This document shows, piece by piece, positions 3,088 to 59,159 of a stretch of DNA of 64,000 bases. A program made the translations under genes and the position numbers. Numbering within the stretch: position 1 is the first letter of the stretch; the number at the start of each line of letters is the position of its first letter. The notes beneath the pieces were generated by a model. The model saw only the letters and a list, made by a program, of their open reading frames with translations, made no database searches and was not told where the DNA came from. The stretch is from sequence record NC_023719.1; one strand, written 5' to 3'.

Positions 3088-4584
3088 GTGTTGGTATTGG
3101 TATTAATTAAGGAAGAGGAAGTTTTATCCCCAGCAGCAGCTTATGAGTTTTTAACTACTCCTTTTAGTCATCAGGTAGAGAGTTTTAATTATGCTCTTGA
3201 GCATGATAAGTTTTTATTAGGTGACGAGCAAGGATTAGGGAAGACAAAGCAATCTATTGATATGGCAGTATATCGAAAGCAAACTGAAGGAATTAAGCAT
3301 TGTTTAATAGTTTGCGGAGTTAATAGTTCAAAGCGAAACTGGGTAAAAGAAATACACACTCACTCTAATGAGGATGCTTTAATACTTGGTACGAGAGTAG
3401 GGAAAAGAGGAAAACTATATATTGGTGGCTCAGTGGAAACAAGAATTGAGGATTTAGAGGAAGTATTACAAGGTGGAATAAGTCAGTATTTTTTAATTAC
3501 AAACGTAGAGACTTTGAGAAATAAAAAAGTACGTGAGTATTTAAATGACTTGACAGAAGCTGGTATGATTGGCTTTACTATTTTTGACGAAATTCATAGA
3601 GCGAAAAATGCTGAGAGTAAACAGGGAAAAGCTATTCATTGTATTAAATCAAAATACAAAGTAGCCCTTACGGGAACACCGCTTATGAATAACCCTATAG
3701 ATTTATTTAATGTCATGAAGTGGTTAGATGCTTATGAATTTGCATTTTATACTTTCCGTCATAGATATTGTGAAATGGGTGGTAAGGGTGGTCACGCTAT
3801 TGTAGGATACAAAAACCTAAAAGAGCTGCGTGATATGTTCGAAAAAATAATGCTAAGACGTAAGAAAAGTGATGTACTTGATTTACCAGATAAGATTCGC
3901 CAGCTTGAAAGAGTTCAAATGACTCCTAAGCAAGCAATGATTTATAAAGATGTACGTGAGTGTATTATGGCAAATATCCAACAAATAAAGTTGAGTCCTA
4001 ATCCGCTCGCTCAATTAATTCGATTAAGACAAGCTACTGGTTATACAGGTATTTTAAGTGATACTATTCAGGAGTCCGCAAAAATTAATCGTCTAAAAGA
4101 GATGTTGGAAGAAGTAGTTGCAAATGGTCATAAAGCTTTAGTGTTTTCTAACTGGACTTCTATGACTAATGTATTAAAAAGAGAATTAGAAGAGTACAAC
4201 CCAGCTGTGATTACTGGTGAAACAAAGGATGTTGACTTCGAGAAAGAAGTATTCCAAAATGACCCTGATTGTAAGATCGCTATTGGTACAATCGGAGTTA
4301 TGGGGACTGCTCACACATTAACAGAAGCCTCTTATGTTTTCTTTGTAGATAAGCCATGGAACTTCGCAAACGTCGAACAAGCAGAAGATAGAGCTCACCG
4401 TATTGGTACAACGAAGAATGTTACTTGTATTACGTTAGTTTGTGAGAATACTATTGATGAACGCATAGAAGAAATTATATTCAATAAAGCCGAGTTATCA
4501 CAAGGTTTAGTTGAAGGTGACAATGATGTAATTGAAAGACTTAATGTCGATACAGATTCATTAGTAGACCAACTACTTTCTTAA
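3088..4584 (+). CDS. SNF2-family (SF2) helicase/ATPase
   Basis: GDEQGLGKT Walker A, DEIH Walker B, LTGTP motif III, QAEDRAHRIG motif VI. Confidence 0.95.
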   Translation: MLVLVLIKEEEVLSPAAAYEFLTTPFSHQVESFNYALEHDKFLLGDEQGLGKTKQSIDMAVYRKQTEGIKHCLIVCGVNSSKRNWVKEIHTHSNEDALILGTRVGKRGKLYIGGSVETRIEDLEEVLQGGISQYFLITNVETLRNKKVREYLNDLTEAGMIGFTIFDEIHRAKNAESKQGKAIHCIKSKYKVALTGTPLMNNPIDLFNVMKWLDAYEFAFYTFRHRYCEMGGKGGHAIVGYKNLKELRDMFEKIMLRRKKSDVLDLPDKIRQLERVQMTPKQAMIYKDVRECIMANIQQIKLSPNPLAQLIRLRQATGYTGILSDTIQESAKINRLKEMLEEVVANGHKALVFSNWTSMTNVLKRELEEYNPAVITGETKDVDFEKEVFQNDPDCKIAIGTIGVMGTAHTLTEASYVFFVDKPWNFANVEQAEDRAHRIGTTKNVTCITLVCENTIDERIEEIIFNKAELSQGLVEGDNDVIERLNVDTDSLVDQLLS

Positions 4585-8463: not shown

Positions 8464-8514
8464 AATTATTTGAAAATTGTAAATAATTTCTCAGTTTTGG
8501 TATATAATATAATT

Positions 8515-8700
8515 AAGAGGAACGCTACCCTCGAGGATGATCGTTTAACGGCTAGGCAGGCGTCAGCCATCTGTGTTTTAACAGTTGCCTGGGCTTTCAC
8601 TGAGCAATCGCATACCAGTTATGCATAATGATTGCCTTCTGAAACGTATAGGGTCATATTTACAAAGAGAACTTGGGACGGAACCCCTAAGTTCTCTTTT
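8515..8700 (+). ncRNA. candidate structured small RNA
   Basis: TATAAT at 8503-8508, no ORF, GC-richer, nested stems, strong terminator 8664-8700. Confidence 0.65.
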
Positions 8701-8835
8701 ATTTTGTAGTTAAATGAAGCTTAAAATAGTTAAAAAATAGTGTTTACATTGTGAATTGAATATGATATAATTAATTTATAAGGTAGGAAGGAAATAAACC
8801 TTATAAAATAATTAATTATATTGGAGGAATTATAA

Positions 8836-18549: not shown

Positions 18550-18680
18550 TTTACATAATATTATGACTATGATATAATTTATACAATAATAGTACATTAA
18601 ATTATAATTATTTGAATCACTGTAGTTCATTCTCAGTGATTTTATTTAAAATATAAATATATTTATTGAGAGGATGAAAA

Positions 18681-19016
18681 ATGATGTTAGAAGCAGCATT
18701 AGTATTAGATAAAGAAGAATTAATTCAATATAAAGAATTCTTAATGGATAAAACAAATTTAAATCAAAAAGAACAATTTACATTATATAAGGTTAATTTA
18801 GCTCTTCAAAAAATCAAAGAAACAGAAGATTTGATGAATAAACCTGTCTTATTTAATGCTGTTTATGATTCAGGTGTTGGCTTTTATGATGGGGTAACAC
18901 GTGGTCAAGAGTACCCTGTGCTTGAAGAATTAGAAGATCAATATGTCATCATTAATGATAATCTTAAAATGAGCATGTTAAATAAATCTAAGTTTACAAG
19001 ACCTGAACCCCATTGA
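18681..19016 (+). CDS. hypothetical protein
   Basis: GAGAGG RBS; no canonical terminator before the downstream RNA. Confidence 0.8.
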   Translation: MMLEAALVLDKEELIQYKEFLMDKTNLNQKEQFTLYKVNLALQKIKETEDLMNKPVLFNAVYDSGVGFYDGVTRGQEYPVLEELEDQYVIINDNLKMSMLNKSKFTRPEPH

Positions 19017-19019
19017 TAT

Positions 19020-19690
19020 GTTCCACTTGCTTAGCAAGTTCCACAGAGAGGTTATCCAACCTCTCGCCTTCTCTCTTTTCTTTTGCTTCTTTTTTTTGAT
19101 CTCTTCTTTGATCTCAAGATGTACTTAACACTTCTTCAGGTAGGCAAGCTTGAAGTGTAGAAGTGGACACACTTCTATCCCCCTGACAGTAGAAAACACT
19201 CAAGAAATACGAGAGAGCACACTACTATCTAAAAGGGGAGATCACTTAACTCTTCTTCAGTATAGGCTAAGAATTTCGTGCCGTAGCGTATCTTTTGCAA
19301 GACTCTTCCAGGTCTGTCGTTACAGAGTATGTTATTTCTAATATTTGGCTACGTTCCCTCACTTGCAGCTTAATTATGAATCCAACAGTTTCCAGTGGTA
19401 ATTAAGAAGCATCACAGGACGGTTAACTAACATGGTGAGTGTTAGTTGCTTCTGGAAATGATTGACGTTCCCCATCTAACGGACCATCTATGGACTGGTA
19501 TCACCATTCACTATTACCATGAGTTTATCCATAGGTGGTCACTATCCACTACTCCTCAGTTGACGGCTGAACAGGTTTTGTAAAGTATCTTTTAGATCAA
19601 CTTCATTGTTAAGAGTTTAGATACTTAGCTACAATCGTTATTACACACAAAAACCCTTACTAACAACGTACGCTAGTAAGGGTTTTCTAC
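19020..19690 (+). ncRNA. candidate large, highly structured ncRNA
   Basis: No credible ORF; GC-richer; many 6-13 bp stems; G-U pairs favour plus strand; terminator 19650-19690. Confidence 0.7.
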
Positions 19691-19694
19691 TTTG

Positions 19695-19875
19695 CAAATT
19701 TGCTCACTAAAAATTTAAATATCTTTTAAGATATTGTTATAAAATGAGTGCCACTTTCATATAATGTATATGAAAGAGCTTTGGAAAATAGAAAACAACT
19801 AGTACCAGTAGTTGTTATTCTAGTTATTGAGATGCTGTCAACATTTCAATAACCCAAGTTCTTTTTTATTTTGAA
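19695..19875 (+). ncRNA. tandem hairpin array downstream of the large RNA
   Basis: Back-to-back stems such as CTTTCATATA/TATATGAAAG, AACAACTA/TAGTTGTT, GTTATTGA/TCAATAAC. Confidence 0.5.
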
Positions 19876-20055
19876 CTTAACGAGTATTATGTATTTTTTT
19901 ATCTTTACGTTTATTGAATACAAGTTGTTTTATGCAATATAACCATTTTTACATACTTATTTACAAAGACAACTAAAATTTATTTAAAAAACAGTTTACA
20001 AACTATGCATATCGTGATATAATTAAATTATAAATAAGGAACGGAGTGACGTAAA

Positions 20056-20301
20056 ATGAAAATCACAGTAAAGTTTATTCAAGAACGCAACGAAGATGGC
20101 GAGAGATATTATGCTTTTCTTGATAGAAGCAGAAATGAGTTTCGTTTATATATAGAGAATAAAATTGATATGAAAATATACGAATGGTACGAAATAAGTG
20201 CAACAATTCTAGGAGAAGGTTATAGTTCACCAGTAGAATCACAAGCGATTCATACGATTATTACGGATGTAAAAGTAATTAGACAAGTTGAAATTGAGTA
20301 A
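20056..20301 (+). CDS. hypothetical protein
   Basis: Cassette ORF. Confidence 0.8.
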   Translation: MKITVKFIQERNEDGERYYAFLDRSRNEFRLYIENKIDMKIYEWYEISATILGEGYSSPVESQAIHTIITDVKVIRQVEIE

Positions 20302-58681: not shown

Positions 58682-59049
58682 GTAGAAAAAGCGATAATAA
58701 CATAGAAACAACTCCTAGACAGAAACAATACTCTGTTTCAAGAGGAAATAGTTCCAACCCAAGAGAATTTGCAGGGGTATTTAAAGCCTCTCATTATACT
58801 CCTCATTGTAAAGGTTGTACAGGAAAAACAGCGAGTGGTGCACCAGCTACCCCTGGAGTTACCGTTGCGGTAGATCCTAGTTATTGGCCATTAGGAACTA
58901 AGTTCTATATTGAAGGTTATGGTTATGTCGTTGCACAAGATACTGGTGGTGCAATCAAAGGAAGGAACAGAATGGATATTTGCGTTTCTTCTACCGAAGA
59001 GGCTTACCGACTCGGTGTAAAAGATGTTAAAGTTTATGTAATACAATAA
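58642..59049 (+). CDS. 3D-domain (lytic transglycosylase-like) cell wall enzyme in the -1 frame, with no start of its own
   Basis: Own translation: ASHYTPHCKGCTGKTASG...VAVDP..WPLGTKFYIEGYG..VAQDTGGAIKG.RMDICV; open frame 58642-59049. Confidence 0.85.
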   Translation, partial: RFNKKIQGIREALSRKSDNNIETTPRQKQYSVSRGNSSNPREFAGVFKASHYTPHCKGCTGKTASGAPATPGVTVAVDPSYWPLGTKFYIEGYGYVVAQDTGGAIKGRNRMDICVSSTEEAYRLGVKDVKVYVIQ

Positions 59050-59159
59050 TTAATTTATTTCTTACTGTAAGTAAGCTATGACTCACTAAGTAATAAATAT
59101 TTATAATAGTGTTATTTATCTCTTGAAGGGTAAATGTTTCCCTTCAAGGGGGTCATAGA

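Follow-up and report, generated by a model that had tools for sequence, protein, structure and literature searches.

The right-hand end of the Bacillus phage G genome (JN638751; 497,513 bp; host Bacillus megaterium) contains a GC-rich island free of long open reading frames (ORFs) between the genes gp621 and gp622. Our analysis indicates that this island probably encodes a structured EGFOA-class non-coding RNA on the minus strand, antisense to the plus-strand genes that surround it. The island spans 19017-19690 of the window, which is the whole 64-kb stretch of DNA analysed here and in which position 19000 corresponds to position 452513 of JN638751. Judged from sequence, the phage G copy is a divergent member of the known EGFOA class, ~200 nt in length (19282-19491) and covering about a third of the island. 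An initial annotation of the same DNA had proposed a structured RNA of ~650 nt on the plus strand, belonging either to the ROOL or GOLLD RNAs or to a new class. The core idea, that the GC-rich ORF-free stretch holds a structured-RNA gene, is borne out for about a third of the island. An RNA gene does appear to be present, but it lies on the minus strand and measures ~200 nt, and the proposal of a new class gives way because the part with homologs belongs to a class (RF02955) already described by Weinberg et al. 2017 (PMC5737381).

EGFOA match on the minus strand

Rfam 15 was searched over the full 64 kb at gathering score and, in a permissive mode (E≤10), over 18600-20100. No family was found in the window at gathering score. 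The permissive search returned one notable match, EGFOA, on the minus strand at 19281-19440 with 32.7 bits and an E value of 9e-4, and even at E≤10 it gave no match to ROOL, GOLLD, OLE, intron or RNase P models. By these searches the island is not a ROOL or GOLLD RNA. In the Rfam alignment, the H2 helix of phage G is handled as a 55-nt insertion, and box A is placed wrongly because the model cannot span an inserted 23-nt hairpin.

We assembled a comparison set of 19 EGFOA or EGFOA-like loci, drawn from viral and metagenome contigs and from one genome, with phage G not among them. MAFFT alignments of the full-length members misaligned P1, H2 and H3, so two restricted models were built instead: a gapless core model (R1) from a hand-cut alignment of 12 relatives (A4), and a profile (R2) from all 19 relatives in which only H4 is annotated (A6). 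Searching the window with R2 gave a single full-length match, on the minus strand at 19296-19491, with 53.5 bits and an E value of 2.4e-19 under a rough calibration; the runner-up scored 5.7 bits. R1 found the phage G H4 alone (22.9 bits, E 2.7e-5; relatives span 20.3-29.1 bits), a local match that arises because a gapless model cannot bridge insertions. No model gave a match on the plus strand. In addition, the pattern CCGUCYU-N-GUAANNNNAGACCUGG has a single occurrence in the 64 kb and none in shuffled sequence, and the composite motif has an analytic expectation in the window of 1e-6, or 3e-13 with both 5′ boxes added.

The Rfam permissive match, R2 and the composite motif agree on the core at 19282-19491, the sole part of the island that has homologs. 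This conserved core runs on the minus strand from ~19491 down to 19282, beginning with the 5′ extension motif CCGUUAGAUGGGG (19470-19482; family form CCGUYnGAnGG), which is absent from the Rfam model and is aligned by R2, and ending with P1. Box A (UUUCCAGA, 19451-19458) follows, then the inserted 23-nt hairpin, Hx (AACUAACA/UGUUAGUU, 19425-19447), which has same-place hairpins in relatives, and box B (CCGUCCUG, 19415-19422), a single-stranded box 5′ of H2 that contains CCGUCCU. Constrained folding places an enlarged H2 at 19369-19406, where an 8-bp helix (CUUAAUUA/UAAUUAAG) carries an apical stem-loop; its apical element, CCACUGGAAACUGUUGG (19382-19398), is of the CCACUGGnAAC..GUGG type. Between H2 and P1, the minus strand reads as the purine strand GUGAGGGAACGU. 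P1 (19282-19353) joins CGUAGC (19348-19353) to GCUACG (19282-19287) through six Watson-Crick pairs, in both the Rfam alignment and the constrained fold, and encloses a weak H3 of 3 bp as well as H4, from which it is separated by a 14-nt linker. H4 (19302-19328), identified by the R1 match and by covariation, is a 5-bp helix (ACUCU/AGAGU) around the 17-nt loop GUAACGACAGACCUGGA (19307-19323). The EGFOA family loop likewise has 17 nt (GUAAnnnnAGACCUGG, also written GUAAAGCUAGACCUgGG), and the phage G loop fits it.

Box A, as read from the sequence, provides the partner for this loop. Its UUUCCAG (19452-19458) forms seven pairs with the CUGGAAG end of the H4 loop, one of them U-G, and the resulting pseudoknot would lock the fold. 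The predicted phage G RNA thereby shows every EGFOA hallmark, namely the CCGUCCU box, H4 with its 17-nt loop, P1, and a 5′ CCAG box pseudoknotted with the loop. All 19 invariant family positions are intact, and the core helices are entirely Watson-Crick. The 5′ motif CCGUYnGAnGG also explains a repeated ACGTTCCC reported in the initial annotation, because ACGTTCCC is GGGAACGU on the minus strand, following two similar EGFOA sub-motifs. A different pseudoknot had been proposed on the plus strand, between a TGGTGAG loop and a downstream TCACCA, and it has no counterpart in the relatives. A second pseudoknot on the minus strand, between CCAG at 19495-19498 and the H2 apical loop, was considered and dropped as unsupported, because alignment A5 suggests that the loop CUGGnAAC may equal the canonical GGnUA box. 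An upstream CCAG box 5′ of the CCGUYnGAnGG motif is seen in phage G, L038, L046 and L008.

Relatives and family architecture

For gp621 and gp622, the genes on either side of the gap, searches of IMG/VR and of 5.8 billion proteins gave no relatives. There were therefore no syntenic loci to compare, and relatives were sought by RNA pattern instead. In viral contigs, the pattern CCGTCYT-N(35-65)-GTAANNNNAGACCTGG yielded 17 loci. Nine viral loci in all (IMG/VR) score above the Rfam EGFOA cut-off of 37.7 bits, and most of the other pattern loci are look-alikes slightly under it (L011, 37.3; L018, 37.0; L029, 31.7 bits). This cut-off is conservative, as L018 falls below it and is a near relative of L006 (44.2 bits), and L011 falls below it as well. 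A genome scan added Aneurinibacillus tyrosinisolvens L038 (NZ_BBWZ01000024), the only real locus among 15 matches; 13 fell by chance in coding sequence of GC-rich genomes, and L031 lacked the family boxes. A metagenome scan contributed one bioreactor sequence type (L046-L050), and L052 and L069 came from a scan with the 5′ motif. Two further patterns were run on viral contigs. A long-gap pattern gave mostly coding chance matches, the exceptions being phage G and L029, and a CCACTGG pattern gave one false match (L051). An unrelated viral contig, itself a chance pattern match, contains a '6A RNA' (RF02925) above gathering score at L013:8974-9024.

Constrained folds indicate one architecture in all relatives and in phage G. 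From 5′ to 3′, the family order is the CCGUYnGAnGG motif where present, box A (CCCAGA), an optional hairpin, box B, H2, the purine strand, and P1 enclosing an optional H3 and H4. The CCGUCCU of box B is identical in 19/19 aligned relatives; the pattern used to collect them demanded CCGTCYT, leaving C or T free at position 6. The 5′ motif, ~25-45 nt upstream of box A, is common to phage G, L069, L008, L052, L038 and L046. A hairpin at the place of Hx occurs in L004, L012, L010, L011, L029, L038 and L046 as well. The enlarged H2 with its CCACUGGnAAC..GUGG tip is restricted to phage G, L038 and the bioreactor contigs L046-L050. The closest relatives of the phage G copy are L038 (67% identity by blastn over 121 nt, E 2e-8) and the bioreactor metagenome sequence. 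Neither L038 nor the bioreactor contigs are detected by Rfam at E≤0.1. The Rfam model thus misses both the 5′ motif and an enlarged-H2 subclass comprising phage G, Aneurinibacillus and the bioreactor sequence, and the EGFOA class is therefore broader and longer than catalogued.

Covariation supports the two central pairings. In H4, the three inner pairs are paired in 17/17 sequences, with 9-10 double changes each. In the pseudoknot between box A and the H4 loop, four pairs are invariant across the family and one varies, being C-G in 9 sequences, U-A in 4 (phage G included) and U-G in 1; the U-A pair of phage G is, by this comparison of sequences, compensatory. The strand is fixed by three observations taken together: the G-U pairs in H4, an intrinsic terminator in L038 that lies in the same sense ~90 nt after P1, and a TTGACT promoter conserved in the same sense upstream of L006 and L018.

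These features bear on another possible origin of the island, as horizontally acquired DNA (for instance, a piece of another phage's non-coding region) that has lost its function and is decaying. A GC content foreign to phage G, flanks without relatives and a sub-threshold Rfam score would all suit a remnant. Decay would, however, strike first at the 19 invariant positions, the Watson-Crick core helices and the compensatory pseudoknot pair, which are the very features retained, and we regard a remnant as highly improbable.

Beyond the core, the relatives differ in what surrounds the conserved boxes. L006 and L018 share a sharp ~430-nt conserved island around the core, running from the TTGACT promoter to a covarying GC-rich hairpin, and their flanks beyond it are unalignable; the transcript in these loci is therefore ~4× the length of the Rfam motif. 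L004 and L012 are ~92-100% identical for ~420 nt upstream of box B, roughly at least 300 nt of which is non-coding, and in the Aneurinibacillus and bioreactor contigs the core sits in structured gene-free regions of 0.9-1.4 kb. In L004/L012, L011, L046 and L069, the 300 nt that follow the core contain direct repeats scoring above shuffles, each lineage with a repeat sequence of its own; such lineage-specific repeats just downstream of the core are found in 6/19 loci.

Two further observations concern the neighbourhoods of individual relatives. In L069, a low-GC viral contig, the EGFOA copy (3240-3580) stands beside what looks by eye like a tRNA-like gene cluster on the other strand, a neighbourhood that GOLLD and ROOL are likewise reported to have. 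In L050, the EGFOA core is followed after ~400 nt by a 378-aa ORF (1417-2553, oriented) whose N-terminus by eye resembles TnpB (IS605 OrfB). L046, although otherwise identical, lacks this ORF, which is probably an unrelated insertion.

Extent of the transcript and the rest of the island

The island lies in a 1040-nt gap without GenBank annotation between gp621 (18681-19016, +) and gp622 (20056-20301, +), within a long series of small plus-strand genes of no assigned function. It extends from the end of gp621 to a hairpin at 19650-19686 and is itself unannotated in JN638751. The description of this stretch as ORF-free and GC-richer holds: its longest ORF has at most 63 aa, and its GC content is 0.38-0.41 versus 0.20-0.30 in both flanks. 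A protein-coding reading was dropped, as the six short ORFs of the island matched no Pfam or PHROG family. No tRNA or tmRNA genes were found in the window, and when the island was compared by blastn with 50,697 phage records, the only match was phage G itself. Outside the EGFOA core, the segments 19017-19280 and 19492-19650 (~470 nt, 70% of the island) have no match in phage records, viral contigs or the flanks of any EGFOA locus; blastn against those flanks gave nothing above chance.

The features of these flanks were largely described correctly at the outset, and a string check located every quoted arm pair and repeat where it had been placed. Directly after the gp621 stop codon are two hairpins (19025-19039 and 19046-19065), followed by a 48-nt tract (19066-19113), reported initially as a 5′ pyrimidine tract, which is indeed pyrimidine-rich on the plus strand and purine-rich on the minus strand. 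The region 19025-19113 is possibly the gp621 terminator region. A direct repeat follows, with one copy at 19117-19145 (minus sense GCCUACCUGAAGAAGUGUUAAGUACAUCU) and another, 121-122 nt away, at 19239-19267; it scores 38, whereas shuffles average 18.7 and reach at most 33, and a scan of viral contigs with the 29-nt unit found phage G only. The modular design that had been suggested from a 115-120-nt spacing fares less well, since spaced repeats do exist but only two short repeats stand behind it. Directly 5′ of the core in the minus sense, a 13-bp hairpin with a 33-nt loop (19482-19540) contains one G-U pair on the plus strand and one C-A mismatch on the minus strand. At the far end, the 13-bp terminator-like hairpin at 19650-19686 proved to be perfect; it has an 11-nt loop, because of which a strict terminator scan missed it, and with an A-run and a T-run at its sides it looks like a bidirectional terminator. 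In the minus sense it precedes the EGFOA core, and in the plus sense it is followed by UUUUCUACUUU.

Folding of the island had been expected to fall below shuffled controls, and for the whole island this is the case on both strands (z -3.9 on plus, -5.65 on minus). In segments, the excess is mostly gone, with z of ~0 for 19281-19486, -0.3/-1.3 (plus/minus) for 19487-19649 and -2.0/-2.3 for 19110-19280. The excess folding signal of the island therefore appears to stem mainly from the hairpins at its two ends.

These data also bear on the original proposal of a single ~650-nt plus-strand RNA, a ROOL or GOLLD relative or a new class, extending from the gp621 stop through the 5′ pyrimidine tract to the terminator at 19650-19686. 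Such an RNA would share the orientation of the neighbouring genes, would place the terminator-like hairpin at its 3′ end, and would profit from the whole-island folding on plus and from a few helix extensions that pair solely through G-U on that strand. The argument from G-U pairs does not carry over to the island as a whole, as the helices are split, some needing G-U on plus and others on minus, and the minimum free energy (MFE) is lower on the minus strand (-188.7 versus -174.5 kcal/mol). Moreover, homologs exist only for the part that corresponds to EGFOA on minus, no model matches plus, the large-RNA families proposed are missing even from the permissive search, and the loop-loop pseudoknot is not kept in relatives. 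We consider a plus-strand RNA of this kind very unlikely.

A minus-strand transcript could be longer than the core. The whole island might form one RNA of ~450-650 nt, with EGFOA as its conserved heart and 19017-19280 and 19492-19650 as peripheral domains specific to phage G. In a genome of 29% GC, the GC enrichment persists throughout 19020-19650, and this lack of interruption argues for constraint across the island. The conserved non-coding blocks beyond the 108-nt Rfam model in L006/L018 and L004/L012 point the same way, as do the long structured gene-free regions in the Aneurinibacillus and bioreactor contigs and the somewhat better folding of 19110-19280 than of shuffles on minus. Against these stand the lack of homologs for the flanks, which leaves no covariation test for them, the weak segment z-scores, the fact that no promoter or terminator delimiting such a transcript was found, and the need of the flank helices 19097-19109/19232-19244 and 19482-19540 for G-U on plus. 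On balance, we view one long minus-strand RNA as possible, though doubtful.

The same flanks could instead belong to a mosaic of independent elements, in which a compact EGFOA gene adjoins gp621 terminator hairpins, a bidirectional terminator and protein-binding DNA sites, the 29-nt repeats and palindromes being regulatory or origin-like. The repeats downstream of the core in the relatives differ as would be expected of lineage-specific protein sites, the hairpins at 19025-19065 come directly after the gp621 stop, and the neighbouring 19690-20055 consists of successive near-perfect palindromes framed by divergent promoter-like sites. However, DNA that binds proteins would have no need of 40% GC across 260 nt, there is overlap between the repeats and predicted hairpins, and just 6 of the 19 loci have such repeats. 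A mosaic is thus a tentative account of the flanks, and one we hold with clear reservation.

The palindromic stretch beside the island is of interest in its own right. The AT-rich, ORF-free 19690-20055 contains near-perfect palindromes at 19716-19735, 19750-19779, 19792-19817, 19823-19853 and 19855-19877, has MFE z-scores of -5.4 to -5.7 on the minus strand, and includes divergent sigma-A-like sites at 19995-20023 (plus, for gp622) and 20055-20027 (minus). It could act as an array of operators or terminators; alternatively, it might encode a second minus-strand RNA, with its end at the hairpin 19650-19686.

The assignment of a minus-strand EGFOA gene has to be weighed against several points. 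The Rfam score of the phage G copy is below the curated gathering score, every neighbouring gene is on the plus strand, and the strong hairpin 19650-19686 lies upstream of the core in the minus sense. No convincing minus-strand promoter was found (the best site, at 19612-19584, scores 9/12, and promoter-like sites are no commoner than in shuffles), nor was a minus-strand intrinsic terminator downstream of 19282, nor, in the literature, a transcriptome study of phage G. The P1 segments in alignment A4 were picked by hand, so P1 covariation there is circular and was not counted. The folding energy of the core equals that of shuffles (z 0). Folding no better than shuffles is not unusual where the conserved parts of an RNA are single-stranded or pseudoknotted, but it lends the assignment no support. 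Lastly, what is proposed on oligomerisation and function is an extrapolation from two other EGFOA members.

With these points in mind, the EGFOA assignment suggests a working model. The RNA would be transcribed from its own promoter between 19650 and 19500 and would act in trans. By extrapolation from the two EGFOA RNAs solved by cryo-electron microscopy (cryo-EM), it may form a small homo-oligomer through self-association, and this homo-oligomer could serve as a scaffold or decoy during infection. We further speculate that EGFOA is the conserved core of larger, lineage-variable phage RNAs of 400-650 nt, of which that of phage G would be the largest, a minus-strand RNA spanning most of 19017-19650 whose self-assembling pseudoknotted core would carry peripheral domains found only in phage G, the duplicated 29-nt unit among them. 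This wider proposal is, in our estimate, unlikely as it stands. The ~470 nt of GC-rich sequence unique to phage G are a candidate for further RNA structure. EGFOA, an orphan class, recurs in IMG/VR viral contigs, and because phage G can be grown on a laboratory host, experiments such as gene deletion, timing of expression and pull-down of partners are feasible.

Elsewhere in the window, a second GC-rich (0.43) ORF-free stretch lies at 8513-8706 on the plus strand. It has an MFE z of -3.3 and matches no Rfam family; a sigma-A-like promoter (TTGTAA ... TGGTATATAAT, ~8478-8510) is found just upstream, and a 14-bp intrinsic terminator with a U-run (~8663-8706) closes it. We consider it a candidate phage small RNA (sRNA) of ~190 nt. 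A further GC-richer gap in the ORF map, at 58682-59159, is an artefact of the ORF start rule and by eye looks protein-coding (a 3D-domain-like peptide with the motif DTGGAIKG) and not like RNA.

Comparison with known systems

EGFOA RNAs are regarded as putative sRNAs in unusually long gene-free regions, and cryo-EM of two members has revealed RNA-only homo-oligomers, a trimer or a strand-exchanged dimer (10.64898/2026.07.01.735769). The phage G copy resembles the class in its CCGUCCU box, H2, P1 with H3 and H4, 17-nt loop and loop-complementary 5′ CCAG box, in its long gene-free setting, the 1040-nt gap, and in a strand logic equal to that of members having a promoter or terminator. It differs in the 23-nt hairpin between box A and box B, in an H2 enlarged to ~38 nt or more with the apical element CCACUGGAAAC, in the 14-nt linker between H4 and P1, and in a 5′ motif, CCGUYnGAnGG, that lies outside the Rfam model. 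Its context also sets it apart, as the genome is that of a jumbo phage (497 kb), the neighbouring genes run on the opposite strand, and the ~470 nt of GC-rich flank are unique to phage G. L038 and L046-L050 share with phage G the box order, the H2 apical element, a GAUGAGG-type purine strand and the 5′ motif, whereas their flanks are unrelated to those of phage G. Unlike phage G, L038 has its copy in the same direction as the neighbouring genes, with a clear terminator.

GOLLD and ROOL are large RNAs of Firmicutes phages and prophages (PMC5737381; 10.1101/2024.12.08.627333). There is no sequence or structure match between these RNAs and the phage G copy, the conserved unit is ~200 nt as against 500-800 nt, and the architecture is unrelated. 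The parallels lie in the setting and in the assemblies formed. Both groups are phage-borne, GC-rich relative to the genome and located in gene-free stretches, some EGFOA relatives (L069) being near tRNA genes, and members of both form RNA-only homo-oligomers in vitro. If EGFOA does prove to be the core of 400-650-nt RNAs, it would represent a third kind of large assembly-forming phage RNA beside GOLLD and ROOL.

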